From contig NC_052149.1 in assembly GCF_902713615.1 (NCBI RefSeq), forward strand, positions 126,049,256 through 126,113,255: a stretch of DNA of 64,000 nucleotides, in the 5' to 3' direction. The DNA is from Scyliorhinus canicula. Lineage: Eukaryota. The notes beneath the pieces are model-generated. The model searched no databases. It was not told where the DNA came from and was given only the letters and a program-made list of their open reading frames with translations. This document shows positions 25,877 to 61,587 of the stretch, piece after piece; within the stretch, counting starts at the first letter, position 1, and each line of letters starts with the position of its first letter. The position numbers were made by a program, and so were the translations under genes.

Positions 25877-25925
25877 ATGATTTCAGCCATCCAGCTGATC
25901 TGGCCTCTGGCATTCTGCATCGCAG
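25877..25925 (+). CDS. IGKV: Ig kappa-type V leader exon (MISAIQLIWPLAFCIA-G)
   Basis: ATG, hydrophobic signal peptide, phase-1 GT donor at 25926; typical shark NS4-like leader. Confidence 0.93.
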
Positions 25926-26111
25926 GTACAAATCTCTCTCCTTCCACCTTGAATATTTTCCTGCTCTCCATTTCAATCCAATTCTACTGACTTGTGATTG
26001 AAGGGAAAATGCTGAAAGCAGAGGAACAGTCAGTGTCTCCAACAATATCTCATTGTACAGGCTCTTTCTGTGACAGTTCTTACTTCACTCTGTTTCTCTA
26101 TTACCCCTCAG

Positions 26112-26407
26112 GTATCAGTGGAGACATCATCATGACCCAGTCTCCCCCGGTGCTGTCATTGAGCCTGGGCCAGACCGCGACCATCACCTGTACGGCCAGC
26201 CAATCTGTCAGCTATTATGTTGCTTGGTATCAACAGCGAGAAGGTCAGAAACCGGCTCTGCTGATCTACTATGCAACAACTCGATTCACAGGAACATCCG
26301 ACCGATTCACCGGCAGTCAATCTGGAACACAATTCACCCTGACAATCAGCAATGTACAGAATGAGGATGTCGCTGATTATTACTGTCAGCAAGGTTACAC
26401 CCCACAA
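26112..26407 (+). CDS. IGKV: Germline V segment, shark kappa (NS4/type III-like), open frame
   Basis: AG acceptor; [45 protein letters not shown] with both Cys and the Trp conserved. Confidence 0.97.
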
Positions 26408-26435
26408 CACAGTGATACAGAGCCTTACAAAAACC
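26408..26435 (+). other. 12-bp-spacer recombination signal sequence
   Basis: CACAGTG + ATACAGAGCCTT + ACAAAAACC, consensus heptamer and nonamer. Confidence 0.98.
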
Positions 26436-26781
26436 TCAATAAACACTTTCCGACCTCCTCTCCTGACACGGAGCACAGTTTTATATAATATATGAACAGT
26501 TTTATATAAACACAAGTAAGGAATCTGAACACATTATTTTCACTGTCCACTACACACTCCAGTCACTGAAGGCCTCAGGTTTTTTACTCTCCATGTCCAC
26601 GGTATGAAGAGCAGCTGAAAGATTTATCATTCAAAATTGGACTTCTCAAATCTCCCAACAAAACACAGAGACATTGAGAGAAACAGAGAGAGAAAGAGTG
26701 AGAGAGAAAGACATGAGTGAGTGAGAGACACAGAGAGAGACAGAGAGAGGGTGAGAGTGAGTGAGTGAAGCAGAGAGCAGA

Positions 26782-26820
26782 GGTTTTTGTACAGCCCCTG
26801 CACTGGAAGCTGTCAGTGTG
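26782..26820 (-). other. 23-bp-spacer recombination signal sequence of J
   Basis: GGTTTTTGT + 23 bp + CAGTGTG (reads CACACTG on the minus strand). Confidence 0.95.
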
Positions 26821-26855
26821 GCTTACGTTCGGTAAAGGAACCAAGCTCAGACTGA
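26821..26855 (+). CDS. IGKJ: J segment (LTFGKGTKLRL)
   Basis: FGxG motif; phase-1 donor GTAAGT at 26856 is in frame with C. Confidence 0.96.
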
Positions 26856-28107
26856 GTAAGTAAACCCCAATCCTCCGTTATTAACCCTTTCAATACTGAA
26901 ACTTTCTCAAACACAAATGCTGAATAGTTGAAGGTGTTAGTGAGGAGCTGCAGTGAATGAAATGGTTCATTGAAGAACACTGTGTAGAACAGGGTGCCCA
27001 GCTGTATTTCTTTAGTTCCATTCCCCCCTTTAAGCAGCAAGATATAAGTAAGCAGCTTTTACCCACCGTGTGGAGGAGATCTGGACGTTTGCAGACTGTG
27101 TTCACATTCCTGGACCATGGAGTGAAATCACTCACTAGACTCCTGTCAGTCTGTGTGTGACAGACACGGGCAGAGTTTGATGTGAGCTCTGGCTCCCTGT
27201 CACACTCTCTGATATAACTGATCACAGCAGCAGCAGCAGCCCAGTGAGACACCGAGGTCCCACTTCCCCCAGCTTTAACTCTGCTCTCTCCACTCCCTGC
27301 TTATCTCTTAGCAAAGTTCTGATGACAAACAGGTCCAGCAGGGCTCACAATCCAGTGGCTTCAGTGTTCCAGGCTTTTGGGGAGACTCTCAGTTACTTTC
27401 TCTTTGGGTCGAGTTCAGTCTGATATTTATTCCTGATCCAATATTCCTGAAAATCCCTGGAGATATTTTTATTGTTTGATGTGATGTGTGATCTCTGGCT
27501 GGGCCAGCATTTATTGCCCATCCCTAATTGCCCTTGAACTGAGTGTCTTGCTCGGCCATTCCAGAGGACATTTCAGAGTCAACACATTACTGAGGATCTG
27601 GAGTCACTTGTAGGCCGGACAAGGTCAGGATGGCAGGTTCCCACTTCAGACCCACACATCCCATAAATTAACTTTTGAAAATGGCCCAAACTCCACTTTC
27701 CTGCCTGACTCCATAACCCTTGACCCCCGTCAATCAAAAATCTGTCGAATTCAGCCTGGAATATATTGAATGTCCCAGCATGCACTGCTCCCTGGGAAAG
27801 AGAATTCCAAAAACTAACGACCCTCTGAGAGAAGAAATTCCTCCTCATCGCCACCTTAAATGGAGATTCCTTATTTTTAAACTGTATCCACTAATTCTAG
27901 GTTCCCCACGAGGGGAAACATTCTCTCAGAATCCACCCTGTCAAGCTCCCTCGGAATCTTATATGTTTCAATAAGATCACCTCTCATTCTGCAATGAGTA
28001 CAGACCCAACCAGCTCAACCTTTCCTCATCAGACATTCCATTCCTCAGTGGAATCAGTGGTTACGGGGATAGGGTGCAGGAGTGGTCCTAAGTAGGGTGC
28101 TCTTTCG

Positions 28108-28343
28108 AGGGCTGCATGGTGGCACAGTGGTTAGCACTGCTGCCTCACGGCCCCTAGATCCCAGGTACGATCCCGGCTCTGGGTCACTGTCCGTGTGGAG
28201 GTTGCGCATTCTCCCTTTGTTTGCGTGAGTTCCACCCCCACAACCCCAAAATGTGCAGGGTAGGTGGATTGGCCACACCAAATTGCCTCTTAATTGGAAA
28301 AAATGAATTGGGTTTGATAAATTTATTTAATAAAAAAAGAAAA
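28108..28343 (+). mobile_element. tRNA-derived SINE (same family as 12349-12575)
   Basis: A/B boxes, core, flanking direct repeat TAGGGTGCTCTTTC. Confidence 0.8.
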
Positions 28344-29132
28344 TATAGGGTGCTCTTTCCACTCGATGGGCCGAATGGCCTCCTTCTGCACTGTAAATTC
28401 TATGATTCTCTGAGACCAAAACTGTGCCCAGTACTCACAGTGTAGTCTCCCCAATGTGCTGTATCGATGGAGCAAGACTTCCCTACTTTTATACTCCATC
28501 CCCCTTGTAATAAAGGACAACATTCCATTGACCTTCCTCATCACTTGCTGTACCTGCAGGTTAACTTTCTGTGATTCATACACAAGGACACCCAGATCCC
28601 TCTGTACCACAGCTTTCTGCAGTCTCTCTCCATGTCAATAATATTCTGATTTTCTATTCTCCCTAACAAAGTGGACAAGCTCACATTTCCCCACATTATA
28701 CTCCATCTGTCAAATGTTCTCCCCACTCACTGAACCTATCAATATCCCTTTTCAGACTCTGTATCCTCCTCAAAACTTGCTTTCCTACCTATCATTTTAT
28801 CATCAGCAAATTTAGCTACAATACTGTCATTGCCTTCATCCAGCTCATTAATATAGATTGGAGAATTAAAACCCCAAACAACAGCCATCTTCCTTTGTGC
28901 TGGGTATGACTCCAGCCAGCGGAGAGTTTTCCCCCTGATTCCCATTGACTCCAGTTTTGCTCGGGCTCCTTGATGCCAAACCCGGTCAAATGCTGCCTCG
29001 AGGTCAAAGGGCAGTTACTCTGTCCTCACCGCTGGAGTTCAGCTCTTTTGTCCATGTTTGAACCAAGGCTGTAATGAGGTCAGGAGCTGAGTGACCCTGG
29101 CAGATTCTTAACTGAGCGTCAGTGAGCAGGTT

Positions 29133-29326
29133 ATGAAATGAAAATGAATGAAATGAAAATCGCTTATTGTCACGAGTAGGCTTCAATGAAGTTACTGTGA
29201 AAAGCCCCTAGTCACCACATTCCGGCGCCTGTCCGGGGAGGCTGGTACGGGAATCGAACCGTGCTGCTGGCCTGCTTGGTCTGCTTTAAAAGCCAGCGAT
29301 TTAGCCTGGTGAGCTAAACCAGCCCC
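29133..29326 (-). mobile_element. Short SINE with (CATTT)n tail
   Basis: GGTTCGATTCC B-box on the minus strand; splits the Deu-LINE fragment with a short TSD-like repeat. Confidence 0.75.
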
Positions 29327-29549
29327 TCAGTTATTGCTGAGTAAGTGTTGCTTGATAACACTGTCGTTAACAACACCAATAATTTTGCTGATGATCGCGA
29401 GATGGTTGACGGACAGTAATTGTCCGGATCGAATTTGTCAGCTTTTTGTTGACTGGACACACCTGGGTAACTGGTCGATGCCAGTTATGTATCTAAACTG
29501 GGGCAGCTTGGCTGGGGGGTGTGACCTGGACACAAGACCGCCAGAAATA

Positions 29550-29885
29550 CATAGAACATAGATATAGAACAGTACAGCACAGAACAGGCCCTTCGGCCCT
29601 CGATGTTGTGCCGAGCAATGATCACCCTACTCAAACCCAAGTATCCACCCTATACCCGTAACCCAACCTTACTTTTTTAGGACACTACGGGCAATTTAGC
29701 ATGGCCAATCCACCTAACCCGCACATCTTTGGACTGTGGGAGGAAACCGGAGCACCCGGAGGAAACCCACGCACACACGGGGAGGACGTGCAGACTCCGC
29801 ACAGACAGTGACCCAGCCGGGAATCGAACCTGGGACCCTGGAGCTGTGAAGCATTTATGCTAACCACCATGCTACCGTGCTGCCC
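29550..29885 (-). mobile_element. HE1-like SINE
   Basis: Near-identical to 9765-10114. Confidence 0.88.
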
Positions 29886-31530
29886 CTAAATAGGAGCAGG
29901 ATTTCTCCAGTGTTGCTATTCAATTTTCCCACCAGCAGCACATCACCGCCATCGGGTTTCACAGCGGCATCGGGTGGTTGCTGTGGCAAATCCCATTGAC
30001 AATTGACGGACAGATATAATCCTGCCGCCAGTGAATGGCACGCAGCCAATAATCACGCAGCTGGTGAACCGGACGTTCCCGCACAGGAGCAAGGATAGAT
30101 TATTCTGACCCCTGGACACAGAGGCTAATCGTAATCTCAGTCTTGACCTGAGCCCAGGGCTGGGCAGCAAGGTTTGAAGTGAAACCTAGAACCTTCTACA
30201 CTGGCAGCCAATCAGTATCCTTTGTGAAGTGTGTTGATCCACGTCTGCTCCAACGTTCTGGGATAAATTTCTCCGGTTCTGTGTGTGATTTGAGGTTTGT
30301 TAATGTTCAACCTGTTCCCCCAGAAATAGTTCGAGCTTCCTAATAGTTTAATAGGATTAAATGGGACACTGCATCTTTAAATACTCTCACTATTAACCAT
30401 TTCAGTGCTGAATTTGTAGTGAACTTCTTTACAAATGTCTAAGTAACATTCCAAAATGATTTAACCAGCTTAACATCAAACCTTTACCTCCTGACACTGA
30501 ACCAATTTGAAATCCAATTTGTCACTTTCACTTGGATTCCATCAGCTTTTAATTTTCAGACACGTCTGTCTTTGGAAACTTGGCAAAATCCTTGGAAAAC
30601 CCATGTTGTCAACATCAAACTCACTCCCGTCATCAACCCACCTCGTTCCCTCCTCATCAAATTCAAAATCGCTCCCTCAGCCTATCTCTTCCTCCCTTTT
30701 TAAACAATGGTACAACATTATCATCCAGCAGTCCTCCGACACCACGCCTGTAGTCAGGGAGGATTGGAAAATAATGGTCAGATCCTCCGCTATTTCTTCC
30801 CTGAGCAGCCTCGGATACATTTCACCCGGGCCTGGGGGTTTCTTCCCTTTCAATGCTGCCAAACACATTAATATCTCCTCTCTCACGATTTTTATCACAT
30901 CCAATATTTCACAATTCTTCTCCTCCTGAACACCAATGTCTGCTTTGTCCCTCGCATTAGTGAAAACTGATGTAAATAATTCATTAAGAACCAACTCCAT
31001 GTTTTCTACCTCCACACACAAGTTACATTTTGTTCTCTAATTGGTCCCACTCATTCATTAGTTATCCTCTCACAATGTCCCTCACTAATGCTTTGTGTGA
31101 ACATATTTATTCTGAACTCTCTCTATCTCCAGCTTGAATATCCTCCCCCTGCTCTGTCACTGTTTCCTGTCCATTTTGGCAAATCCCAGTTTCGTAAAAT
31201 TGCCCTTTCCCCAATTTAAAACTTTTCCTCTTGGTCTATCTTTACCCTTTTCCAGAAATTACTCTAAATCTAACTGAATGATGATCACTATTACCCAAAT
31301 ACTCTCCCATTGATTCCCCTTCACCTGCCCAGATTCAATTGCTAAAACTGTCTAAAACTGCTCCTTCTGTTGTTGGGATTGTTTCGTACTAGTTAGAAAG
31401 GTTGCTCAGAATGGATTGTCAGAATTCCAGACCACCTATATATTGATACATGTCTTGATTCCAGTTAATATATTGGAAGTTGAAAACCTTTATAATGGCA
31501 GCGATTAAAATTCCTTCTCTTCTCTTTCAG

Positions 31531-31859
31531 GCCGTGAGAATTCACAACCCACACTGACCCTGCTGCCCCCCTCCCTGGAGGAGGTCAAGACCAAGGGCAC
31601 TGCCACCCTGGTGTGCCTTGCCAATCACTTCTATCCCGATGAGCTGGTGGTGGAGTGGAAGAAGGATGGTGCAGCCATTTCGGACGGGGTTCAGACCAGC
31701 AACTACCTGCGAGCTTCGGACAACACCTACAGTGTCAGCAGCCTGCTGACCCTCTCTGGCTCTGCCTGGGAGTCCAACGCCAGCTTCTCCTGTGCCCTCA
31801 CCCACGTGAGCCTCTCCTCTGCCCTCAGCAAGAGCATCAGGAGATCAGAATGTGCGTAG
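31531..31859 (+). CDS. IGKC: Ig light-chain constant exon, shark kappa type
   Basis: Polypyrimidine-CAG acceptor; (S)RENSQPTLTLLPPS..TATLVCLANHFYP..W..YSVSSLLTL..FSCALTH..RSECA*; AATAAA at 32358-32363. Confidence 0.97.
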
Positions 31860-32807
31860 AGTGTCAGAGACAGTCCACAGAGGAGACACAACTTTAAATA
31901 GAACAGGGGTGAGCTGGGAGGGCAAAGGTCATTGTCAGCACTGAATTACAACCTTCTCGGGACTGGGTCTGAGACACTTCTGAGGGTCAGGGGTTAAGAC
32001 ATGTTTTTGGGACAGTGCAGAGGGATATTTACTCTGCATGTAATCCCATGCAGCATTTGTCCTGGGAATGTTTGATGGGACAGTGCAGACTCGTGATGCC
32101 AAGTAAAACCTCTCTAAGATGCTGAAGACTGTCAGCTGTACCAAAATAACGTGACCCCTGAAGTCTCTGCTTCGGGAAACCAGACCTCCTTCCTGCTCAC
32201 CCTGCAGTTACAATTTAAGGTTTAGTCACCGTTTAAAGGGACAGGATTCTCATGTCATTGAGAAAATCTCTATATTTTCCCTGTGAATTTCTCCAGCTTT
32301 CTCTGGCTGGGCTGTTTATTCAAGTCTTTCTTCTGACAATGTAAATCTGTAAAAGGTAATAAACATTAAGAATATTCAGTATGTGTCTCGAGTGTGCTTT
32401 GGAAATGTCCCTCCTCCCCATCAGCTGATTGGCTTCATTTCAGCAAGTGATTGTCATGATTGGCTAGTTGGCCTGTCAATCAATGACACATCAGCAGAAC
32501 ATTGGATTCAAAGACAATTATCAATCATTTTAAAATGATCAGTTTTATCTGTTTTGTGAGGGTCACAAAGAATCCAGCACAAGTTGAAGGATAGAAGGAA
32601 ATAACATTTATTTACAATAACATATCTATACAACAGCAGCAGCAACTCCCTTGCTGCTCACTCCTCTCTAGCTGGTTCCAAACTGGCCAGCTTTATTTAT
32701 GCAGCGAATCTGCTTATGATTTCTGCCCCAACCCCCTCATTGGGGAATCTCATACTCCCATAGGATTGTGGGATTGCCATTAGTCCCCAGCCAGTGGGAA
32801 GCAGGCA

Positions 32808-35800
32808 TAGAACATAGAACATAGAACGATACAGCGCAGTACAGGCCCTTCGGCCCTCGATGTTGCACCGACATGGAAAAAAAAACTAAAGGCCATCTAA
32901 CCTACACTATGCCCTTATCATCCATATGCTTATCCAATAAATTTTTAAATGCCCTCAATGTTGGCGAGTTCACTACTGTTGCAGGTAGGGCATTCCACGG
33001 CCTCACCACTCTTTGCGTAAAAAAACCCACCTCTGACCTCTGTCCTATATCTATTACCCCTCAATTTAAGGCTATGTCCCCTCGTGCTAGCCACCTCCAT
33101 CCGCGGGAGAAGGCTCTCGCTGTCCACCCTATCTAACCCTCTGATCATTTTGTATGCCTCTATTAAGTCACCTCTTAACCTTCTTCTCTCTAACGAAAAC
33201 AACCTCAAGTCCATCAGCCTTTCCTCATAAGATTTTCCCTCCATACCAGGCAACATCCTGTTAAATCTCCTCTGCACCCGTTCCAAAGCTTCCACGTCCT
33301 TCCTATAATGAGGCGACCAGAACTGTACGCAATACTCCAAATGCGGCCGTACTAGAGTTTTGTACAACTGCAACATGACCTCATGGCTCCAGAACTCAAT
33401 CCCTCTACCAATAAAGGCCAACACACCATAGGCCTTCTTCACAACCCTATCAACCTGGGTGGCAACTTTCAGGGATCTATGTACATGGACACCGAGATCC
33501 CTCTGCTCATCCACACTACCAGGAATTTTACCATTAGCCAAATATTCCGCATTCCTGTTATTCTTTCCAAAGTGAATCACCTCACACTTCTCCACATTAA
33601 ACTCCATTTGCCACCTCTCAGCCCAGCTCTGCAGCTTATCTATGTCCCTCTGTAACCTGCAACATCCTTCCACACTGTCTACAACTCCACCGACTTTAGT
33701 GTCGTCTGCAAATTTACTCACCCATCCTTCTGCGCCCTCCTCTAGGTCATTTATAAAAATGACAAACAGCAACGGCCCCAGAACAGATCCTTGTGGTACG
33801 CCACTCGTAACTGAACTCCATTCTGAACATTTCCCATCAACTACCACTCTCTGTCTTCTTTCAACTAGCCAATTTCTGATCCACATCTCTAAATCACCCT
33901 CAATCCCCAGCCTCCGTATTTTCTGCAATAGCCGACCGTGGGGAACCTTATTAAACGCTTTACTGAAATCCATCATCAACTGCTCTACCCTCGTCTACCT
34001 GTTCAGTCACCTTCTCAAAGAACTCGATAAGGTTTGTGAGGCATGACCTACCCTTCACAAAACCATGCTGACTATCCCTAATCATATTATTCCTATCTAG
34101 ATGATTATAAATCGAATCTTTTATAATCCTCTCCAAGACTTTACCCACCACAGACGTTAGGCTCACCGGCCTATAGTTACCGGGGTTATCTCTACTCCCC
34201 TTCTTGAACAAAGGGACCACATTTGCTATCCTCCAGTCCTCTGGCACTATTCCTGTAGCCAATGATGACCTAAAAATCAAAGCCAAAGGCTCAGCAATCT
34301 CTTCCCTGGCTTCCCAGAGAATCCTAGGATAAATCCCATCCGGCCCCGGGGACTTATCTATTTTCACCTTGTCCAGAATTGCCAACACTTCTTCCCTACG
34401 CACCTCAATGCCATCTATTCTAATAGCCTGGGTCTCAGCATTCTCCTCCACAATATTATCTTTTTCTTGAGTGAATACTGACGAAAAGTATTCATTTAGT
34501 ATCTCGCTTATCTCCTCAGCCTCCACACACAACTTCCCACCACTGTCCTTGACTGGCCCTACTCTTACCCTAGTCATTCTTTTATTCCTGACATACCTAT
34601 AGAAAGCTTTTGGGTTTTCCTTGATCCTACCTGCCAAAGACTTCTCATGTCCCCTCCTTGCTCATCTCAGCTCTCTCTTTAGATCCTTCCTCGCTTCCTT
34701 GTAACTATCAAGCGCCCCAACTGAAACTTCACGCCTCATCTTCACATAGGCCTCCTTCTTCCTCTTAACAAGAGATTCCACTTCTTTGGTAAACCATGGT
34801 TCCCTCGCTCGACCCCTTCCTCCCTGCCTGACTGGTACGTACTTATCAAGAACATGCAATAGCTGTTCCTTGAACAAGCTCCACATATCCAGTGTGCCCA
34901 ACCCTTGCAGCCTACTTCTCCAACCAACAGATCCTAAGTCATGTCTAATGGCATCATAATTGCCCTTTCCCCAGCTATAACTCTTGCCCTGCGGGGTATA
35001 CTTATCCCTTTCCATCACTAACGTAAAGGTCACCGAATTGTGGTCACTGTTTCCAAAGTGCTCACCTACCTCCAGATCTAACACCTGGCCTGGTTCATTA
35101 CCCAAAACCAAATCCAATGTGGCCTCGCCTCTTGTTGGCCTGTCAACATATTGTGTCAGGAAACCCTCCTGCACACATTGTACAAAGAATGACCCATCTA
35201 ATGTACTCGAACTATATCTTTTCCAGTCAATATTTGGAAAGTTAAAGTCTCCCATAACAACTACCCTGTTACTTTCGCTCTTTTCCAGAATCATCTTCGC
35301 CATCCTTTCCTCTACATCCCTAGAACTATTAGGTGGCCTATAGAAAACTCCCAATAGGGTGACCTCTCCTTTCCTGTTTCTAACCTCAGCCCATACTACC
35401 TCAGAAGAAGAGTCCCCATCTAGCATCCTTTCCGCCACCGTAATACTGTCCTTGACTAGCAGCGCCACACCTCCCCCTCTTTTGCCCCTTCTCTGAGCTT
35501 ACTAAAACACCTAAACCCCGGAACCTGCAACAACCATTCCTGTCCCTGCTCTATCCTTGTCTCTGAAATGGCCACAACATCGAAGTCCCAGGTACCAACC
35601 CATGCTGCCAGTTCCCCTACCTTATTTCGTATACTCCTGGCATTGAAGTAGACACACTTCAAACCACCTACCTGAACACTGGCACCCTCCTGCGAAGCCA
35701 AATCTGTGCTCCTGACCTCTATACTCTCAATCTCCCGTACCCCAAAACTACAATCCAGGTTCCCATGCCCCTGCTGAATTAGTTTAAACCCCCCCAAAGA

Positions 35801-37431
35801 GCGCTAACAAATCTCCCCCCCAGGATATTGGTGCCCCTCAGGTTCAGATGTAGACCATCCTGTCTATAGAGGTCCCACCTTCCCCAGAAAGAGCCCCAGT
35901 TATCCAGAAATCTGAATCCCTCCCGCCTGCACCATCCCTGTAGCCACGTGTTTAATTGCTCTCTCTCCCTATTCCTCATCTCACTATCACGTGGCACGGG
36001 CAACAACCCAGAGATAACAACTCTGTTTGTTCTCGCTCTGAGCTTCCATCCTAGCTCCCTAAAGGCCTGCCTGACATCCTTGTCCCCTTTCCTACCTATG
36101 TCGTTAGTGCCAATGTGGACTACGACTTGGGGCTGCTCCCCTCCCCCTTAAGGACCCGGAAAACACGATCCGAGACATCACGTACCCTTGCACCTGGGAG
36201 GCAACATACCAAACGTGAGTCTCTCTCGCTCCCACAAAATCTCTTATCTGTGCTCCTGACTATTGAGTCCCCAATTACTAATGTTCTACTCCTTTCCCCC
36301 CTTCCCTTCTGAGCAACAGGGACAGACTCCGTGCCAGAGGCCCGTACCCCATGGCTTACCCCTGGTAAGTCGTCCCCCCCCACAAGTATCCAAAACGGTA
36401 TACTTGTTACTCAGGGGAACGACCGCAGGGGGTCCCTGCACTGACTGCTTCTTCCCAGTCCCTCTTACAGTTACCCATCTATCTCCAGTCTTTGGTGTAA
36501 CTACTTCCCTGAAGCTCCTATCTATGACCCCCTCTGCCTCCCGAATGATCCGAAGTTCATCCAGCTCAAGCTCCAGGTCCCTAACACGGTTTTTGAGGAG
36601 CTGGAGTTGGGTGCACTTCCCACAGATGAAATCAGCAGGGACACTGACGGCGTCCCTCACCTCAAACATTCTGCAGGAGGAGCATTGTACTGCCTTCCCT
36701 GACATCACCTCTAGATTTAAAAAAAACAAGAAAAAGAAAAAGAAAGGAAGAGCTACCTGATATTACCTCAAACCCTGCTCCCGCTTAAAGGTAAGCAAAT
36801 TTAAAGGCACTCACTCACCTTCACGACAGGCCCCTGCTCCCGCTTCCCAACCACCGTGGGGTGGGGGGGTTGGTTAGAGGAGGAGGTAGAGTGGGAAACA
36901 CTCACAAAGTGTTTCCGGTTTAACTGTCACTTGCCAACAGCCCCTCCACAAACCACCTTCAACTTAGGCTGACCGCACTGCACGTATGCAAATTTCCCCA
37001 GAACAGCTGATCAGTAGCTCTGCTCTGCTGCCCTCTGCTGGATGCTTGCCTTCACTCAAACTCCTTGGGTCTCCTTCGCAGGTTCACCTTCAACTTAGGC
37101 TGACCGCACTGCACGTATGCAAATTTCCCCAGAAGAGCTGATCAGTAGCTCTGCTCTGCTGCCCTCTGCTGGATGCTTGCCTTCACTCAAACTCCTTGGG
37201 TCTCCTTCGCAGGTTCACCTTCAACTTAGGCTGACCGCACTGCACGTATGCAAATTTCCCCAGAACAGCTGATCAGTAGCTCTGCTCTGCTGCCCTCTGC
37301 TGGATGCTTGCCTTCACTCAAACTCCTTGGGTCTCCTTCGCAGGTTCACCTTCAACTTAGGCTGACCGCACTGCACGTATGCAAATTTCCCCAGAACAGC
37401 TGATCAGTAGCTCTGCTCTGCTGCCCTCTGC
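32808..37431 (-). mobile_element. Full-length CR1 LINE, frameshifted
   Basis: ORF1 zinc finger/zipper (CSSC..CGKC) and SGNH esterase (GDSIVR, DGLH); ORF2 FNARSI, GDFN, FADDTK; (GTTCTAT)n tail; tandem 5' UTR. Confidence 0.94.
36950..37431 (-). repeat. 131-bp tandem repeat (about 3.7 copies) in the CR1 5' UTR
   Basis: ATGCAAAT at 36986, 37117, 37248, 37379. Confidence 0.93.
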
Positions 37432-37560
37432 ATGTTATAACAATCTGGAATCTCTGAGTTTCCAAGATTCAAATCAGAAAAGAGACTGAAAGTTGCTGGG
37501 ATTAAATCATCACAATCACAATTCTCCAACCCATATTCCCCACCTCCCCCTTCTCCCATA

Positions 37561-37815
37561 TTCTCCCTGTGTCTGTGTGGGTTTTCTTTGGGTGCTCCGG
37601 TTCCCCCACAGTCCAAAGATGTGCAGGTTAGGTGGATTGTTCATGCTAAATTGCCCTCAGTGTCCAAAAAGGTTAGGTGGGGTTACTGGGTTACGAGGAT
37701 AGGGTAGAGGCATGAGCTTGGGTGGGGTGCTCTTTCCAAGGGCCGGTGCGCACTCGATGGGCTGAATGGCCTCCTTCTGCATTGTAAATTCTATGAATTC
37801 AATGAAGTCTATGAA
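37561..37815 (+). mobile_element. 5'-truncated SINE
   Basis: V-type core and TTCTATGA tail; absent from the paralogous flank. Confidence 0.7.
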
Positions 37816-38599
37816 TTGTATATGGCCTTAACTCCTCACGTGGTATCACTACTCCCAGTGTTTCAATCACAGATAAGACCATCTCTGATCACTTCCTTAT
37901 ATCACTCCCCACCCACATCCCCCTTTCACACCCCAACCCTACCCCTTTCTGTATCCATCCCTGGAAAAACCTATTCCCCAATTCACTTCCAACGGCACCT
38001 TCAAAATGCCAACTATCTGTCTCTGGCCCTCCGATCACCACAACATTTCTGCAGCGACTGATTTACTCAGGGAGCAATGTGACTGGGAATGAACAGGCTC
38101 CTGTTTTGGGAGTGTTTAGTGGGGTGTTTCCCGGAGCCTGCAGTGCTGAATATGATCCCGTTATTAACCAGGATTCTGGGATATTTGGGCCTTGGTGAGG
38201 AAGGAGCCTCCGAGGCCGCACTGACATCCACTTACTGCGAGCTGAGCCCGTCAGTGCAGGGAGAGATCAGGGGGTGATCTTTAAATGCTGCCCCCATCCC
38301 TCAACTCCCACTGTGGCCTCCGGATTCCCCAAATTACCGATTAGGGGGTTCTCGACCCACCCCCATCCACCCGGCAAAGGCAGGGAACGCACGGGGCCTG
38401 ATCCCAGGCTCGGACAACCTGCTACCCGGGCAGCATGGCAGTGCCAGCCTGACACCCTGGCAGTGCTCATGCCATACTGGTCGTGCCCCATGGACATCTT
38501 GGCAGGTCCAGTGTGGCATTGCCAGGGTGACCAGATGGCATTTCCAGAGTCACCAGGTGGCACTGCCAGCGTGCCAGGCTAGCACTGCTAAGCTGTCTC

Positions 38600-40442: not shown

Positions 40443-42097
40443 ATAACCAACTCTTCAGTTTCGCTGACATTGAGGGAGAGATTGTTGTCATTGCACCAGT
40501 CCACGAGGTTCTCTATCTCCCTCCTGTACTCTGAGTCATCGTTGTTGAAGATCCGACCCACTATGGTTGTGTCATCAGCAAACCTGGACATGGAGTTGGA
40601 GCCAAACTTTGCCACGCAGTCGTGTGTGTATAGGAAGTATAGTAGGGGGCTAGGTAGGCAGCTTTAGAGGGCCCAGGTATTGAGGACAATCGTGCAGCCC
40701 CCCCCCCCCCCCCTCCACCAGCAGTAGAACCGGCATCGAAGAGGTGGTGCCCCTCCGGGTCCGAACCCCTCTCTCTCCCTCATCAGCCACGGCGCCTGTT
40801 TCACGATTGTTAAAAGCACAAGTGAACCTCGCCGTCAGGAACTCCCCCCGATGGAGGCGGAGAATCGCGGAGTCCTGGAGAATACCGGGTCAGGCACGCT
40901 GATATGCCAATGCCATTTTCTCTAAGTGAGGAATGGAACACAATGACGCTGCTGTTGAGGCACCTGGAGAATTGCCATTTTGTGTGAAACCGGCGCGCGC
41001 CACAATTTCAGAGTCAAAACTGATTCCCCACCGAATTGCATTTCGCGATTTTGGTGTTGGCCGACAGAGAAACCCGCCCAACATCTGTCCTTCCTGCAGT
41101 AACTGACTGCTTAACTAATAATGCAATGCCTCCTCCTCATTTACCCCCACCCCTGTCTCGCCTGAAGATTTTATATCAGCTGCCAATCCTGCCCCTCCCT
41201 CAACCACATCTCCGTGATGGCAACTATATCACAATTCCACGGGCTGGATTCTCCGCCGGCGGATGCTTCATTTTGCCGGCAGCCCGGAGGTTTCCCAACG
41301 GTGTGGGGCTGCCCACAATGGGAAACCCCATTGTTTAGCTGGCGTAACGGAGCATCCAGCCAGTGGGGTGAAACAGAAATCTGGGGCGGGATTCTCCAAC
41401 CCCCGCCGGGTCGGAGAATCGCCGGGGGGGGGGGGGAGGCAGCGTGAATCCTGCCCCCGCCAGAATTCTCTGGCACCGGAGATTCGGCGGGGGCAGGAAT
41501 CGTGCCGCGCCGCTCGGTGGGACCCCCCCCTGGCCTGCGATGGGCCGAAGTCCTGTTGGTTCTATGCCAGTCCCGTTGACGTAGATCAGACTAGGTCAAA
41601 CCACAAGGATGTTAGTCCCTCAGTGGTTGAGATGTCGACTGTCCCGCTTGCACAGGTCCCACTTTCACCACAAATGGTCCCAGTGATCTAGGAATTTACA
41701 CCCCTCCCTCCTGCACCAGCTGTTAAACCACACGTTGATCTGCATTATTCTCCTATTTCTGTGCTCACTCGCACCTGGCACTGGGAGTAATCCAGAGATT
41801 ACAATAATAATAATAATAATCTTTATTGTCACAAGTAGGCTTACATTAACACAGCAATGAAGTTACTGTGAAAATCCCCGAGTCGCCACATTCTGGTGCC
41901 TGTTTGGGTACACTGAGGGAGAATTCAGAATGTCCAAATCGCCTAACAACACATCTGTCGGGACTTGTGGGAGGAAACCGGAGCATCCGGAGGAAGCTCA
42001 TGCAGACACAGGGAGAACGTGCAGACTCCACACAGACAGTGACCCAAGCCAGGAATCGAACCTGGGACCCTGGAGCTGTGAAGCACGCAGTGCTACC

Positions 42098-45000: not shown

Positions 45001-46576
45001 TTGGATTCATCTACCACGAGTTGGTTCGTGTTGTGCTTTGCGACCGTGTCGCTGATGCTGTGATAAGCATATCCGACTGACCCAGTCAGGTCTGAGAGGT
45101 AATCGTCGAATAACAAATCATCTTTTGTTGTTTCGGAATTCTTTTTGTTCGCTTCACTGTGTGTGGTGAAGGCAGCTTTTTCCAAGGTTTTGTGCAAGTT
45201 GTTTTTCACTGTTGGTTTAAGTTCAGGCATTTTTCTGTGTTCTGAGGCAAGAAAATTTGGTTTTACCACTTTAAGTGTCTTGTTTTCAATTTTCGGGCAT
45301 TTCCCTTTTAAGTGGGCGTGGTCAGGATTCTCAGACGTCATGACGTCACGCGTTGGAACGACTTGCACATGCGCAAATCGGCTTTCTTTCCTTGTGCGGT
45401 TCGGTGTCCATTGCGCATGCGCGGCTTGCGCATGCGCATGACGGTCCGCGACGAAGACTTTTTTTGACTGCGCATGCGCGGCTTGCGCATGCGCATGACG
45501 GTCCGCGACGAAGACTTTTTTTGACTGCGCATGCGCGGCTTGCGCATGCGCATAACGATCGGCGCCGCGATCTTTTGTAAACTGCGCATGCGCGACTTCC
45601 GGTTCCGGCGCATGCGCGACTTCCGGTTCCGGCGCATGCGCGACTTCCGGTTCCGGCGCATGCGCAGACGCGATTTGTAGTTCTTTGTTTACCATAGACT
45701 GCAAAATGTGCTCCAACGCCATTTTATCGCGGATTTCAGCGTTTTTTCTTTCTAAAAGTTGTAGGTTACCTTTTCTTTCCGATCTGGACTGGATTTCAGC
45801 GTTTTGGCTTTGTGAAAAATTCCTGTTATTTCTTCTTTTTGATCTGTACTGTGCATTCGCGATTTCCTGATCTTTTTGTGATTTTTTAAGTTTTGCATCA
45901 CTCAGTCTCTGTGCAGTTTGGACTGTGAGCATGCCTTGCTGTTCAAATTTCTCACAGTACTCTTCAAATTTGTTTAGTAACGTTTGTAAGCTGTTCCTGT
46001 CTTCACCTTTTGAGTATTTAAATCCATTATACACTTTCCTATTGACAGGCCCTTCGATGAGAATTGCTATTTTAATTTTGTCTGAGGCTTCTGCAACATC
46101 ATTAGCTACATTACTTACATTACCAGTCGTGTCCAGCTGAGGTGGGTATCCATGCCACATCCTCGAATTAGCGATGTCTTCCCCAGTCGAATGTCCAGCA
46201 GGAGATCTCCATGCCATTCTTGGTTGAGATTTCCATGCCATTTTGTGCTTTCTGTATCTGCAGCTGAGTTGTCCTGTCGTAAGCGTCTGAAATCACTCCT
46301 AGGTACCATGTGTTGTTCCTCGTGTCTTAATAAAGCTCGCAGTCTCAAGTGTGGAGAAGATGCTTTATTGTGGGTTCGTTCAGTTTCCAGAGCTCGACCT
46401 AGAACTACCTTCCAGTGCTAACTCCCAGCTTTGCTTGTTCTGTGTGTCCTGCTTACCAGCCCCTGCTGTGAAGAGTGTGTCCTCACTTCCTGTCCTGATG
46501 TATTTATATGGCTCTCCCGTGCTCCCTCTAGTGGTCGCTCAGTTGTGTTGCATCTGGTTAACTTGTGATCACCACA
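42098..46576 (-). mobile_element. Young pol-less LTR retrotransposon (Gypsy-derived, non-autonomous)
   Basis: 268-bp LTRs 42098-42365 and 46309-46576 with no difference seen, perfect TSD CTACC, PBS TGGTACCTAGGAGTG (Leu-like), PPT AAAAGGGGGA. Confidence 0.94.
42777..46241 (-). CDS. 1154-aa gag-derived, tandem-repeat-rich protein of unknown function
   Basis: ATG 68 bp after the 5' LTR; N-terminus resembles a Gypsy gag start (PPQLDTTGN, ASDKIKIAIL, LLNKFEEYC); no protease, RT or integrase motifs. Confidence 0.7.
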   Translation of the reverse strand: MAWKSQPRMAWRSPAGHSTGEDIANSRMWHGYPPQLDTTGNVSNVANDVAEASDKIKIAILIEGPVNRKVYNGFKYSKGEDRNSLQTLLNKFEEYCEKFEQQGMLTVQTAQRLSDAKLKKSQKDQEIANAQYRSKRRNNRNFSQSQNAEIQSRSERKGNLQLLERKNAEIRDKMALEHILQSMVNKELQIASAHAPEPEVAHAPEPEVAHAPEPEVAHAQFTKDRGADRYAHAQAAHAQSKKVFVADRHAHAQAAHAQSKKVFVADRHAHAQAAHAQWTPNRTRKESRFAHVQVVPTRDVMTSENPDHAHLKGKCPKIENKTLKVVKPNFLASEHRKMPELKPTVKNNLHKTLEKAAFTTHSEANKKNSETTKDDLLFDDYLSDLTGSVGYAYHSISDTVAKHNTNQLVVDESNQDDLVFKEYYSDMAESVGYAYHSISDTVAKFNTNQLVVEESNQDDLVFGEYYSDMAESVGYAYHSISDTVAKFNMNQLVVEEANEDEMGFKEYYSDMEELFGHADHSISDTVAKLNTTLLMVDESNTMVPWQLVDTLDDSNTQDQDDATQRAQEDSTERAMTGSTVRVMKDANRDASKHSRADTKHEQDHEGKPAVPEQPQADYESLPSSQEQEERADYESPTRSQEQEERADYESPTRSQEQEEDNAPLPTACEDSDKVITLNVQDHSETDSSQLVCTEAQSENSDKVLALDVQDHSETDSSQLVCTEAQSRATQQSRETMPKENMQILTPEEEHLEPRETMPKENMQILTPEEEHLESTETMPKETMQILTPEEEHLESRDIKQKENMQILTPEEEHLESSEITSTEIMKILTPEAEHQESRETTSTEIMQIWTPEEERRESTDTASNVIEKTLTPEDEHQESKDAESNSPQLIDVTCTCTSDHSHHSRDGMLNDSNYPLGTLIEYNKKNKSQKKHSKNKNNMKRDKTNNNSKKHSRNENDNSKKKSNMKRDKTNNNSKKHSRNENDNSKKKSNMKRDKTNNNSKKHSRNENDNSKNKSNMKRNKTNNNVRHKDSDNDRGRNNKNGNKHNKVRNKDSDNDRDRNNKNGNKHNKVRSKDSDNNKDGNDKNSDKYGNGNNKNRNDRNNSNETTTCTQWQSTPASKADETINQHHKHRKKSMPVNISDVTMQTPRDDALGT

Positions 46577-52908: not shown

Positions 52909-53133
52909 TGTATATAAGTGTGTGCTTGCATTAGGGGATGTATGACAGTACCTGTATTACAGGTTTTCAGGTAAGCCCCTGCCGGCTAGCTCCACCCACA
53001 GGGAGCAGTATAAATATTCATAAGTTTCCCTGAGATGCCATTCTACAGCTGCAGCCGGAGGAATAGCATCTCACTGTAATAAAGCCTCTCTTGTACCATA
53101 TCGAGTCTTTTGTGTGCAACTGTTAGTGCCACA
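52909..53133 (+). mobile_element. Solo LTR (225 bp) in L1 ORF1
   Basis: TG..CA, TATAAA, AATAAA, TSD CGAC/AGAC. Confidence 0.7.
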
Positions 53134-53769
53134 AGACCCATGATGTGGACATTCTGCCGCCAGGACCTGTTCTCCTGGTCTTCGACCTTCCCCTTTAAGT
53201 TCCCCAGGGCTGCCACCAACCTCTTCACCTCGGCCTCCAGAGCTACGATCTTGTCGCTCGGGTCCGTTGACACCTTCTCCAGGTACAAGTTTGTCCTATC
53301 CTGTGCCTCCACCTTCTGTCCCAGGCCTTCTATCGTGCACTGAAAGGTGGCAATTGCTTCTGTAACCACCTCCTTCACCACCACCTGGAACTCCATTTTG
53401 ATCGCTTCCTTCATGCCGGTCAGTTCCTTTTTATGACGCTCTTCTATCCGTCCCCCTGTGTAGGGGAGGGGGGTGTGGTTGTCCACTCCTGCTCTGCCGT
53501 TCGGATCGCTGAGCTTCCCCTGTCCTGGTTTGCCTGGGTCTCCACTTCACCTCGTGGGGCCGCCGGTCCGCTCGCCAGTTGCTCCTACCCCTTTCCTCTG
53601 CTTCTGCCTTCTCGTTGGCCATTCAAACTGCTGTTTGACGGCTACTTCTATTCCCACTCATCGCTGTTCCTGCAAAAACGCAAAACAATTTGTTACGTTA
53701 GGTCCAGCTGAGAGGAGAGCCACCTGATGTGTGTCTGCTCAGCACGTCACCACCACCGGAAGTCGGGTG

Positions 53770-54780: not shown

Positions 54781-55174
54781 TAATAATCCTGTTTTGCTGG
54801 ATCTGGGTGCACTCAGCTGCCAGAAAGTGAAATTGACAAAGGAATGTGTTTTTCAGTCTGGGCTAATAGACTGTGTTTGACTGTGAAAGTTACTGGGGAG
54901 ATAATGGCCGGGTTTCTCCAAAAACGCGGCTGAGTGTTGACGCCGGCGTAAACACCAGAGTGTTTCACGCCAGCGTCAATGGGCCTCTTGGCCCAGCGAT
55001 TCTGTGGCCTACAGGTAGCCAGCACGGGGCCGGAGTGCTCTGCACTCCTCCAGCCGCTGATAAGCGGTCCTACGCTACTGGCCGCGGGTCCGCGCATGCG
55101 TGCGGCGGCCACTTCCGCGCTGGCGCCAAGTGACATGGCGGAGCCACACAGCAGGCCAACACGGAAGAAGATAG

Positions 55175-58100
55175 TGTGACGGTTGAGGAGTATTTATCTA
55201 AGATCTGCCTGAGTAGTCGAGGTTGTAAGCTACTAGACAAGGTCTTGTGAATATCTAAAGTAAGACTCGCTATATGGGAGATCTATTTATAGTAGACACA
55301 ATGTGCCTTGCGTTCACTACCTTTGGTGTACAGGAGAGACTGTGCCTTAGATGACTATCTTATCCTTAACGTGACTAAATAGTTCTAATTCCTGAGAGCT
55401 AGGCATGGGAAAGTGACCCTCCAGATAGCCTCAGAGGGTGAGAATATGATGAGTCTTAGTTAAATGTCACTCTTATTTATTAAAATAGACACGGATCTGT
55501 ATGGCAAAATATATACGCAATTTATTTGAAGATAAAAGGGTAATACAAGAGTTTTGATAAATGATACAGTTTGACAGATACAGGATACGTGATGAGTTAG
55601 CCTGTGACCTTCTTAACTACATAATTGATTAAGCTACAAACATTTCATACTCACAACGACTAGTAGTTGTCTCGGAATTTTATGCTCAATCACGAGCAGA
55701 ATTCTACGAGTCGAGATAGCAGTTTAAACACCCAATAATATCCTAAACAGCTCTCCAAGCGAAACTCTAACTTTCGCAGCTTTTGCTTGAATATTTATAT
55801 TGTTTTTACACTCAGGGAGAGGTAGGGAGTTTGAGGGGAGTTTTAGCATAGCCCCTGCTTCTGAAAAACAAGTTAACTCCCCACAGTTATTTCGAGACAA
55901 AGAACAATCTCTCTCTTAGTTGGCAAGGCCTTAGTTTCAGAGAGGCCTAACGGGGCACCTGTTTCTAAATATACGAGGTTGATACCTCTGGTAGCTATCT
56001 CCAGAAAAACAGCAGCCTCCCTTCTTGGCGAGGTCTCTTGCCAAGCAGCAGCCTCCCTTAGTGACAAGGCCACGAGACAGGCAATAACCTCCCTTAGTGA
56101 AAAGGCCACGAGACAGGCAATAACCTCCCTTAGTGACAAGGCCACTAGACAGGCAATAACCCCCCTTAGTGACAAGGCCACTAGACAAACAATAACCTCC
56201 CTTAGTGACAAGGCCACGAGACAGGCAATAACCTCCCTGAGTGACAAGGCCACTAGACAGGCAATAACCTCCCTGAGTGACAAGGCCACTAGACAAGCAA
56301 TAACCTCCCTGAGTGACAAGACCACTAGACAGGCAATAACCCCCCTTAGTGACAAGGCCACTAGACAGGCAATAACCTCCCTTAGTGACAAGGCCACTAG
56401 ACAGGCAACAACCTCCCTTAGTGACAAGGCCATGAGACAGGCAATAATCCCCCTTAGTGACAAGGCCACTAGACAGGCAATAACCTCCCTTAGTGACAAG
56501 GCCACTAGACAGGCAATAACCTCCCTTAGTGACAAGGCCACTAGACAGGCAATAACCTCCCTTAGTGACAAGGCCACTAGACAGACAATAACCTCCCTTA
56601 GTGACAAGGCCATGAGACAGGCAATAACCTCCCTTAGTGACAAGGCCACTAGACAGGCAATAACCTCCCTTAGTGACAAGGCCACTAGACAGGCAATAAC
56701 CTCCCTGAGTGACAAGGCCACTAGACAGGCAATAACCTCCCTTAGTGACAAGGCCACTAGACAGACAATAACCCCCCTTAGTGACAAGGCCACTAGACAG
56801 ACAATAACCTCCCTTAGTGACAAGGCCACTAGACAGGCAATAACCTCCCTGAGTGACAAGGCCACTAGACAGGCAATAACCCCCCTTAGTGACAAGGCCA
56901 CTAGACAGACAATAACCCCCCTGAGTGACAAGGCCACTAGACAGACAATAACCTCCCTGAGTGACAAGGCCACTAGACAGGCAATAACCTCCCTGAGTGA
57001 CAAGGCCACTAGACAGGCAATAACCTCCCTGAGTGACAAGGCCACTAGACAGGCAATAACCTCCCTTAGTGACAAGGCCACTAGACAAACAATAACCTCC
57101 CTGAGTGACAAGGCCACGAGACAGGCAATAACCTCCCTTAGTGACAAGGCCACTAGACAGACAATAACCTCCCTTAGTGACAAGGCCTCTAGACAGGCAA
57201 TAACCTCCCTTAGTGACAAGGCCACTAGACAAGCAATAACCTCCCTTAGTGACAAGGCCTCTAGACAGGCAATAACCTCCCTTAGTGACAAGGCCACTAG
57301 ACAGGCAATAACCTCCCTTAGTGACAAGGCCACTAGACAAACAATAACCTCCCTTAGTGACAAGGCCACTAGACAAGCAATAACCTCCCTTAGTGACAAG
57401 GCCACTAGACAGGCAATAACCTCCCTTAGTGACAAGGCCACTAGACAAACAATAACCTCCCTTAGTGACAAGGGCACTAGACAGACAATAACCCCCCTTA
57501 GTGACAAGGCCACTAGACAGGCAATAACCTCCCTTAGTGACAAGGCCACTAGACAGGCAATAACCTCCCTTAATGACAAGGCCACTAGACAGGCAATAAC
57601 CTCCCTTAGTGACAAGGCCACTAGACAGGCAATAACCTCCCTTAGTGACAAGGCCACTAGACAGGCAATAACCTCCCTTAGTGACAAGGCCACTAGACAG
57701 GCAATAACCTCCCTTAGTGACAAGGCCACGAGACAGGCAATAACCTCCCTTAGTGACAAGGCCACTAGACAGGCAATAACCTCCCTTAGTGACAAGGGCA
57801 CTAGACAGGCAATAACCTCCCTTAGTGACAAGGCCACTAGACAAACAATAACCTCCCTTAGTGACAAGGCCACTAGACAGGCAATAACCTCCCTTAGTGA
57901 CAAGGCCACTAGACAGGCAATAACCTCCCTTAGTGACAAGGCCACTAGACAGGCAATAACCTCCCTTAGTGACAAGGCCACTAGACAGACAATAACCTCC
58001 CTGAGTGACAAGGCCACTAGACAGGCAATAACCTCCCTTAATGACAAGGGCACTAGACAGGCAATAACCTCCCTTAGTGACAAGGCCACTAGACAGGCAA

Positions 58101-59212
58101 TAACCTCCCTTAGTGACAAGGCCACTAGACAGGCAATAACCTCCCTTAATGACAAGGGCACTAGACAGGCAATAACCTCCCTTAGTGACAAGGCCACTAG
58201 ACAGACAATAACCTCCCTGAGTGACAAGGCCACTAGACAAGCAATAACCTCCCTTAGTGACAAGGCCACTAGACAGGCAATAACCTCCCTTAGTGACAAG
58301 GCCACGAGGCAGGCAATAACCTCCCTTAGTGACAAGGCCACTAGACAAGCAATAACCTCCCTTAGTGACAAGGCCACGAGGCAGGCAATAACCTCCCTTA
58401 GTGACAAGGCCACTAGACAGGCAATAACCTCCCTTAGTGACAAGGCCACGAGACAGGCAATAACCTCCCTTAGTGACAAGGCCACTAGACAGGCAATAAC
58501 CTCCCTGAGTGACAAGGCCACTAGACAGACAATAACCTCCCTTAGTGACAAGGCCACTAGACAGGCAATAACCTCCCTGAGTGACAAGGCCACTAGACAA
58601 GCAATAACCTCCCTTAGTGACAAGGCCACTAGACAGGCAATAACCCCCCCTTAGTGACAAGGCCACTAGACAGACAATAACCTCCCTTAGTGACAAGGCC
58701 ACTAGACAGGCAATAACCTCCCTTAGTGACAAGGTCACTAGACAGACAATAACCTCCCTTAGTGACAAGGCCACTAGACAGGCAATAACCCCCCTTAGTG
58801 ACAAGGCCTCTAGACAGGCAATAACCTCCCTTAGTGACAAGGTCACTAGACAGACAATAACCTCCCTTAGTGACAAGGCCACTAGACAGGCAATAACCTC
58901 CCTTAGTGACAAGGCCACTAGACAAGCAATAACCTCCCTTAGTTTTCGAAGCTTATTTCCAGACAAGGCCATGAGACTTAATGAGTTCACTGCATCTGGA
59001 CTCTTACAAAGATAATACATATTAAAAAACATTTTTGCGATAAGTAATGGTTTAAATTGATAATGGACTGATCAAACAACAGTTTTTAATATCGGGTTAA
59101 ATAGATGATTTTACAGAGCATCAGCTCTGATCAGCTTTTAATATAAAGTGAATATATGATTTAATATAAAATGAGTTCTGATCAGCCTTTAATATAGGTG
59201 GATACCACCACA
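55175..59212 (-). mobile_element. 4.0-kb solo LTR with an expanded internal array
   Basis: TGTGACGGT..ACCACCACA inverted ends, TSD ATAG/GTAG, minus-strand TATAAAT about 55800 and AATAAA about 55480. Confidence 0.75.
56045..58945. repeat. 36-bp minisatellite (AGTGACAAGGCCACTAGACAGGCAATAACCTCCCTT)n, about 80 copies
   Basis: Directly visible; 12-aa periodic ORFs. Confidence 0.97.
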
Positions 59213-61258
59213 GTAGGCCAGGCCCCTCATATCGCGCACGCCGATTGGTGGCCCCGGATCGCTGGCCTGGCCGTTGTGGAGGACTCCCCCCCCCCCCCCC
59301 CCCCCCGCCGGAGACTGATCCCCCTGCCCCCCCCACCAGGAGGGCCACCGCAGCCGCGACGCCGAGCTCCCGCCAGGTGGAACCATACGTGAACCACGTC
59401 GGTGGGAACTCGGCCGGTCGACCGTGGAGGATCGCCACGGGGGCCTCTTTCAATGGCCCCTGACCGGCGCCGCATTGACCGCGTGCACGTGACTGGCGCT
59501 GATTCTCCGGTCGCCGGAGGTTCACATCCCGCCGTCAGACCCGATCTCCATTCTCTGTCCCTGTGCCGAGCGTGATTTCGGCGCAGAGAAACCCGGCCAA
59601 TGTGCTTTGCAGCCTGCAGACATAATTTGCTTTTTTTAGATTCTGTCGACGAGGTCATTGCTGTGTGGAGCCACGGAAGGCAGAGAGACATTTTGTAAAG
59701 TTGTGCAGGATCAATATTCATTTGGAGAAACTTTGCAGAGAGGAGTTGAATTCTGATCTGCCTGGCGCAGAGTCCACAATTCTCCCACATTCAGATGGAT
59801 TGAGCGCTGTGTGTCTCTTTTCTTGTTGTTCAAAGGGAATTGAGTTGTTTAAGGGGTAAGTGTGAGCTGTTATTTTGGGATGTGAAATTTAACAGCTAGT
59901 ATTGTATTCATATTAAACTTTTGTATTGAAATGACCAAATTCTATTTCTTCATGCAACCACTCCTGGTGGAAATCATTCTTTCCGCAGAGTCTGACAAAT
60001 AAACTTAAATATTGGATCCAGTTTCAGAGCCGCTGTTGGAGTCGAGTCTGGGATCATTTTAATGGATAAACCAGTTCTCCACCACATCCTTTCAAGTCTG
60101 CGTCACTTGGATTAAGTGAGTGGAGATGAGGCCGTAGCAGGGGGAACGGTCAGGGTGAGAGAGAGGAATGGTTTTATTGGGAACAAGGATATCAAAGGTG
60201 GAGGTGAGGGTGAGGTTGGGTAAATCAGTCGCTGCAGAAATGTTGTGGTGATCGGAGGGCTAGAGACAGATAGTTGGCATTTTGAAGGTGCCGTTGGAAG
60301 TGAATTGGGGAATAGGTTTTTCCAGGGATGGATACAGAAGGGGGTAGGGTTGGGGTGTGGAAGGGGGATGTGGGTGGGGAGTGATACAAGGACGTGATCA
60401 GAGATGGTCTTATCTGTGATTGAAACTATGGGAATAGTGAGACCACGTGAGATGATCAGGTCAAGGGGGAGGTGGGAATATGGGTTGGAGAATTGTGATT
60501 GTGATGATTTAATCCCAGCAACTTTCAGTCTCTTTTCTGATTTGAATCTTGTAAACTCAGAGATTACAGATAAAACTGATCATTTTAAAATGATTGATAA
60601 TTGTCTTTGAATCCAAGCTTCTGCCGATGTGTCATTGATTGACAGGCCAACTAGCCAATCATGACAATCACTTGCTGAAATGTAGCCAATCAGCTGATGG
60701 GGAGGAGGAACATTTCCAAAGCACACACGAGACACAGACTGAATATTCTTAATGTTTATTACCTTTTACAGATTTACATTGTCAGAAAAAAGACTTGAAT
60801 AAACAGCCCAGCCAGAGAAAGCTGGAGAAATTCACAGGGAAAATATGGAGATTTTCTCAATGACATGAGAATCCTGTCCATTTAAACGGTGACTAAACCT
60901 TAAATTGTAACTGCAGGGTGAGCAGGAAGGAGGTCTGGTTTCCTGAAGCAGAGATTTCAGGGGTCACGTTATTTTGGTACAGCTGACAGTCTTCAGCATC
61001 TTAGAGAGGTTTTACTTGGCATCACGAGTCTGCACTGTCCCATCAAACATTCCCAGGACAGATGCTGCATGGGATTATGTACAGAGTAAATATCCCTCTG
61101 CACTGTCCCAAAAACATGTCTTAACCCCTGACCCTCAGTAGTGCCTCAGTCCCGAGAAGGAGAGAGTTGTAATTCAGTGCTGACAATGACCTTTGCCCTC
61201 CCAGCTCACCCCTGTTCTATTTAAAGTTATGTCTCCTCTGTGGACTGTCTCTAATACT

Positions 61259-61587
61259 CTACACACATTCTGATCTCCTGATGCTCTTGCTGAGGGCAGA
61301 GGAGAGGCTCACGTGGGTGAGGGCACAGGAGAAGCTGGCGTTGGACTCCCAGGCAGAGCCAGAGAGGGTCAGCAGGCTGCTGACGCTGTAGGTGTTGTCC
61401 GAAGCTCGCAGGTAGTTGCTGGTCTGAACCCCGTCCGAAATGGCTGCACCATCCTTCTTCCACTCCACCACCAGCTCATCGGGATAGAAGTGATTGGCAA
61501 GGCACACCAGGGTGGCAGTGCCCTTGGTCCTGACCTCCTCCGGGGAGGGGGGCAGCAGGGTCAGTGTAGGTTGTGAATTCTCACGGC
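61259..61587 (-). CDS. IGKC: Second Ig kappa-type constant exon (inverted paralog; its J and V are presumably beyond the window)
   Basis: 5 differences in 329 bp from 31531-31859; intact acceptor, stop and AATAAA (60755-60760). Confidence 0.96.

Follow-up and report, generated by a model that had tools for sequence, protein, structure and literature searches.

A tail-to-tail pair of immunoglobulin kappa miniclusters in Scyliorhinus canicula, probably rearranging independently

We analysed a stretch of 64,000 nucleotides from Scyliorhinus canicula (NCBI RefSeq assembly GCF_902713615.1, contig NC_052149.1, positions 126,049,256 to 126,113,255; hereafter the window, whose own numbering is used throughout), in which gene segments for a kappa-type immunoglobulin (Ig) light chain lie on both strands. 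The arrangement that we consider probable, and hold with good confidence, is a pair of paralogous, self-contained shark Ig kappa (type III/NS4-like) miniclusters of variable (V), joining (J) and constant (C) segments, placed tail to tail and each rearranging alone. V1 would then join mainly J1, and cluster 2, of which only the C exon falls inside the window, would own a V and a J. An inverted segmental duplication would have produced both copies, different transposons would have entered each later, and the opposed orientation would be a by-product of locus expansion. The original prediction for this DNA had proposed in addition that the geometry permits the two units to swap V-J partners by inversion; the structure is real, the swapping is a predicted idea, and the clusters themselves belong to a known kind.

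Organization of the plus-strand kappa unit

Cluster 1 is a complete, intact kappa-type V-J-C minicluster that spans positions 25877-31859 and keeps to the plus strand throughout. Searching the 64 kb by tblastn with V, J and C peptides returned one V (26123-26404), one J (26822-26857) and two C exons (31534-31860 on the plus strand and 61584-61258 on the minus strand), and no further segment in the window. The segments named at first reading were thus recovered, with bounds corrected to a V coding end at 26407, a J at 26821-26855 and a C1 exon start at 31531.

From its sequence, a V1 promoter is predicted on the plus strand at 25763-25816, 60-115 nt upstream of the ATG, with an octamer-like ATTTACAT at 25763-25770 (one mismatch relative to ATTTGCAT) and a TATAAA at 25811-25816. 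The leader exon (25877-25925, MISAIQLIWPLAFCIA plus 1 nt) is followed by a leader intron of 186 nt (25926-26111) and by the V1 exon (26112-26407), which encodes an intact, stop-free kappa-type V domain with Cys23, WYQQ and YYC. This domain matches Pfam V-set (E=3.6e-18), and among solved structures it is best matched by variable domains of antibody light chains, one entry being named kappa. At 80-92% identity, it matches a nurse-shark light chain as well as proteins named 'immunoglobulin kappa light chain-like' from Cetorhinus, Scyliorhinus, Chiloscyllium, Heterodontus and Hemiscyllium, six shark species in all; the protein search with the V region returned kappa chains of other sharks and none from the present genome. 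No neighbouring gene lay within 10 kb in the Cetorhinus and Hemiscyllium kappa gene records.

The J1 segment (26821-26855) encodes LTFGKGTKLRL with the FGXG motif and ends at a GT donor at 26856, which opens a J1-C1 intron of 4,675 nt (26856-31530, GT..AG) that is for the most part transposon-derived. The C1 exon (31531-31859) encodes a C1-set domain (Pfam E=2e-21) that ends in ...RRSECA, with its stop codon at 31857-31859. Downstream, the C1 3' untranslated region (UTR) and the first block of a conserved 3' flank (31860-32552) contain an AATAAA at 32358-32363 and are 95.5-96% identical to the cluster 2 copy. Assignment to the kappa class rests on the Pfam domains together with the identity to named shark kappa chains. 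Cluster 1 therefore shows what defines a minicluster: a single V, J and C in one orientation, recombination signals of the 12 and 23 types, V-set and C1-set domains, and splicing of VJ to C.

Low-complexity and repeat sequences lie near these elements. A purine-rich, GA/GAGA-type low-complexity tract at 25480-25720 borders the predicted V1 promoter upstream, and a second tract of this type (26640-26770) lies within the V1-J1 gap just before the recombination signal of J1. Farther out, 1.9 kb upstream of the V1 leader, lies a very young retroelement whose long terminal repeats (LTRs) are a pair of 536-bp direct repeats of 100% identity (17466-18001 and 23425-23960).

Recombination signals and the V-J join

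V1 is followed at 26408-26435 on the plus strand by a recombination signal sequence (RSS) with a 12-bp spacer (12-RSS), CACAGTG/12/ACAAAAACC, in which heptamer and nonamer are both perfect consensus, and J1 is preceded at 26782-26820 on the same strand by a 23-RSS that consists of the nonamer GGTTTTTGT, a 23-bp spacer and the heptamer CAGTGTG, with one mismatch relative to the consensus. Each pattern has one match in the window, with none expected from shuffled sequence, and the two signals lie 346 bp apart in deletional orientation. A looser scan of the whole window recovered these two RSSs only. It gave no deleting-element-like or isolated extra RSS, and neither the V1-J1 gap nor the window holds a fused heptamer-to-heptamer pair, the germline trace that a past swap would leave. 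With a single J and no isolated RSS, the window contains neither the spare downstream J nor the deleting element by which mammalian-type editing is recognized.

In the mechanism that we propose, transcription would begin at the V promoter, RAG would bring together the V 12-RSS and, 346 bp from it, the J 23-RSS, deleting the 413-bp interval, and the resulting VJ exon would be spliced to C over the 4.7-kb intron.

Expression of the kappa family

RNA from the same organism (two raw RNA runs and two contig runs) was mapped onto positions 26100-32090; the mapped reads include those of paralogs that are at least 95% identical, so that their assignment to the exact cluster 1 copy is uncertain. The J-C splice from 26855 to 31531 (GT..AG, skipping 4675 nt) is crossed by 12 raw RNA reads and likewise by 7 contigs. 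Read depth was ~67 over the C1 exon, on the strand expected of a plus-strand gene, and ~4 over the V exon; the very high depth at 28100-29900 within the J1-C1 intron reflects repeats. Contigs also joined the end of the leader directly to the V exon (loose end at 26109), and RNA-like contigs carried V-J coding joints from 26386-26399 to 26822-26825, with junctional letters that differ from the germline end of V1. The kappa gene family is thus expressed and the J-C splice is used.

The C1 exon showed in addition that more than the two copies of the window contribute to this RNA. At positions 31553, 31597 and 31782, where C1 and C2 agree, 44-66% of the reads carry other letters because reads of the paralogs map to C1; the prevailing transcripts in the sampled tissue therefore derive from other kappa C paralogs or alleles. 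One contig is of the C1 type across 401 nt save position 31865. The suggestion that the five bases separating C1 from C2 could serve as diagnostic markers is accordingly unsafe: in a multi-cluster genome with further C variants in the RNA, these bases are not unique to either copy. A 3' UTR block at 31953-31974 tells C1 and C2 apart far more clearly than the five exon positions do.

A second C exon within an inverted duplication

The C2 exon (61259-61587, minus strand) is intact, reads ...PPSPEEVR... and ends in ...SECV, and has its AG acceptor at 61589-61588; its 3' UTR and flank (60217-61258, minus strand) hold an AATAAA at 60760-60755. As predicted from the letters, it lies 29.4 kb from the plus-strand cluster (stop to stop, 61259-31859) and differs from C1 at five sites: alignment gave exactly five bases, at C1 positions 31550, 31576, 31588, 31733 and 31855, amounting to three amino-acid changes from C1 to C2 (L>P, K>R and A>V) and two silent ones. 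Retention of the frame, the splice acceptor and the poly(A) signal marks C2 as a real paralog and supports a pair of working units.

The mirrored flanks likewise proved real by alignment, as three opposed blocks that pair 31172-32552 with 61952-60566 (92%), 37443-37552 with 60571-60463 (97%) and 37835-38069 with 60451-60217 (96%). Identity between the copies is uneven, falling to 79% in the intron just upstream of C and rising to 98.5% in the C exon and ~96% in the 3' UTR and flank, a pattern that points to gene conversion or homogenisation within the C region, or else to constraint acting on the 3' flank. Near 32420-32500 this flank contains a CAGCTG E-box and repeated ATTGG boxes. A further block of 217 bp (28881-29097 against 62669-62453, 96%) was considered as evidence of a shared J-C intron and rejected as uninformative, because it overlaps a reverse-transcriptase-like open reading frame (ORF) and looks transposon-derived.

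Upstream of C2, positions 61588-64000 (minus strand) would form the 3' part of the presumed J2-C2 intron, of which only 61588-61952 is homologous to cluster 1 (79%). Neither tblastn nor the RSS scan found a J, V or RSS in these 2.4 kb. Such an absence, together with homology that fades 365 bp upstream of C2, could indicate that a second functional cluster does not exist and that C2 is the orphan C of a partial inverted duplication with no usable J2 or V2, or else an assembly error, the 2.9-kb satellite and several transposons between the copies being of a kind that could mislead an assembler. We regard this as very improbable. The J of cluster 1 sits 4.7 kb upstream of C1, so J2 and V2 are expected beyond position 64000, and C2 retains the frame, acceptor and poly(A) signal noted above. 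Because the window contains no N, both copies lie on one gap-free stretch, and their divergence (79% in the intron and 92-96% in the flanks), combined with private insertions, identifies them as old paralogs and excludes a collapsed or duplicated haplotype.

When C2 was the query of a protein search, only three matches came back, two of them filed under bacterial assemblies. Those nearest to the shark C-kappa domain in the database (P0001, P0002; 86-90% identity) are annotated as 'hypothetical proteins' from Aeromonas veronii and Salmonella enterica, lie on contigs of 507 and 990 bp, and most likely represent contaminating shark cDNA.

Geometry of the pair and the case for partner swapping

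The original prediction held that joining of V1 to J2 would be inversional, and this follows from the geometry, since the V1 12-RSS and a minus-strand J2 23-RSS would point the same way. Such joining is legal under the 12/23 rule. The inversion would give V1-J2-C2 and leave J1-C1 inverted ~0.8-0.9 kb from V2, in deletional orientation, with the signal joint between them. The literature background given with the idea also holds, in that sharks rearrange within clusters and zebrafish Ig light-chain (IgL) loci invert between clusters (PMC5192425, PMC3014032). Of the two benefits claimed for a swap, diversity and receptor editing, the first comes down to the choice of J alone; editing is not added, because two Vs and two Js allow two joins, swapped or not, and because the second join leaves the first in place.

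Several observations weigh against strictly separate rearrangement of the two units and in favour of swapping at an appreciable level, by which we mean that at least a few percent of rearrangements at the pair would be V1-J2 or V2-J1 inversions in developing B cells, as in zebrafish IgL, yielding V1-J2-C2 hybrid chains and restoring a V2...J1-C1 unit. Neither the types of the RSSs nor their orientations stand in its way. The V1 RSS matches the consensus perfectly, and RSSs of such strength permit diffusional, orientation-independent capture in mouse Igk (PMC13190342). The estimated RSS-to-RSS distance between the clusters is only ~40 kb, across an interval in which no host gene was found, whereas nurse-shark heavy-chain clusters stand 82 to >200 kb apart (PMC5192425); at ~40 kb and with opposed polarity, the arguments from distance and shared polarity against inter-cluster joining (PMC3014032, PMC5192425) therefore fail here. 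Zebrafish, moreover, makes inter-cluster inversions in a similar layout (PMC3014032).

We nevertheless judge appreciable swapping unlikely. Every RSS has a compatible deletional partner only 346 bp away, and V1-J2 inversional joins are probably rare beside a local partner at 0.4 kb. In mouse Igk, capture by inversion relies on both strong RSSs and a diffusion platform dedicated to it, whereas linear scanning works in favour of deletional partners (PMC13190342). As far as data are available, V(D)J joining in sharks takes place within clusters (PMC5192425, PMC3014032, PMC12227049), the only kind that reviews describe for them (PMC5192425). A hybrid V1-C2 molecule was unseen in the RNA, although the read tables do not phase V with C. 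Finally, three consensus CTCF motifs 5 kb downstream of C1 could insulate the units from each other.

A broader version of the idea would place the pair within a dense array of mixed orientation, in which the shark kappa locus carries a V-J-C unit each 30-50 kb over >1 Mb and RAG joins neighbours, by inversion where they are opposed and by deletion where they are in tandem; this too seems to us doubtful. If true, the 'autonomous' miniclusters would constitute a proto-translocon open to secondary rearrangement and to true editing. For one join to replace another, units farther apart in such an array would have to be joined.

The interval between the clusters

The CTCF motifs belong to a long interspersed nuclear element (LINE) that is private to cluster 1 (32553-37442, minus strand, 4.9 kb). 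It carries endonuclease and reverse-transcriptase ORFs at 32945-35468 and is missing from the cluster 2 flank in the flank alignment. Its 5' end consists of 131-bp monomers (36954-37431), each with a perfect match to the CTCF consensus (37027-37041, 37158-37172 and 37289-37303; three in the window against 0.02 expected) and each also with an Ig octamer (ATGCAAAT) and a CAGCTG E-box. Judged by its motifs, this transposon-borne array between the clusters could act as an insulator or a promoter.

Beyond the LINE, the remainder of the shared 3' flank (37443-38069, plus strand) comprises 37443-37552 and 37835-38069, between which cluster 1 carries a private insertion of 282 bp. The unshared spacer that follows (38070-60216) measures 22 kb; it contains a 36-bp satellite besides LTR elements and fragments of retrotransposons, and yielded no host gene. 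The satellite (56052-58943) has 80 copies with 94% matches, stays open in three reading frames, and lies 1.3 kb from where the flank homology of cluster 2 stops. A pair of 273-bp direct repeats (42094-42365 and 46304-46576, 99.6% identity) surrounds a 1,154-aa repeat-built ORF (42777-46241, minus strand); 42094-46576 represents a young LTR-like element within the spacer.

Comparison with known systems

Shark antibody genes are the textbook case of 'cluster' organization, in which each V-J-C unit is thought to be autonomous, partly by virtue of distance and shared polarity. Functional nurse-shark kappa clusters are reportedly at least 100 kb apart, as Iacoangeli et al. are said to have described in 2015. 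The two kappa units described here are closer together and opposed, so that distance and polarity fail as explanations of autonomy, and whether RAG respects cluster boundaries becomes directly testable at such a pair. If swapping is true, the divide between cluster and translocon would be blurred, with a bearing on the origin of receptor editing; if false, autonomy would be enforced by something else, such as extreme local proximity or insulation.

In its anatomy, cluster 1 resembles the shark kappa genes (type III/NS4) of nurse shark and horn shark, which have a V with a 12-RSS, a J with a 23-RSS and a gap of ~0.4-0.5 kb, and which share with it the octamer-type promoter, the kappa-like V and a C that ends in Cys plus one residue (PMC2193156). 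The leader intron of the nurse-shark NS4 kappa genes is likewise 186 nt (PMC2193156). In reviews, shark clusters are spatially distant and rearrange internally only (PMC5192425, PMC3014032), whereas here the C exons are 29.4 kb apart and opposed; our searches of the literature turned up no account of oppositely oriented IgL clusters in sharks.

Zebrafish IgL resembles the pair in that its V-J-C clusters sit tens of kb from one another on a single chromosome with opposite polarities, and in that the RSSs are of the 12 type on V and the 23 type on J (PMC3014032). Inversion there retains the intervening segments for later use, as it would here (Zimmerman et al. 2008, PMC3014032). The zebrafish loci differ in that hybrid cDNAs have been cloned, the clusters often have several Vs, and the V frequently points opposite to its own J (PMC3014032), whereas here V1 and J1 are single and of the same polarity, and no hybrid product was seen.

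The mouse and human Igk loci follow the same RSS rule and have strong consensus V RSSs, and inversion is a normal mode of joining there (PMC13190342). Mammalian editing, however, draws on several Js and many upstream Vs, so that a new join replaces the old, whereas a pair of one-V, one-J units only adds a second join. Mouse lambda, like the present locus, has V-J-C units in duplicate on a single chromosome, and these almost always join internally (PMC3014032). Its units share one orientation and its rare cross-unit joins are deletional, whereas a cross-unit join at the catshark pair would be inversional.

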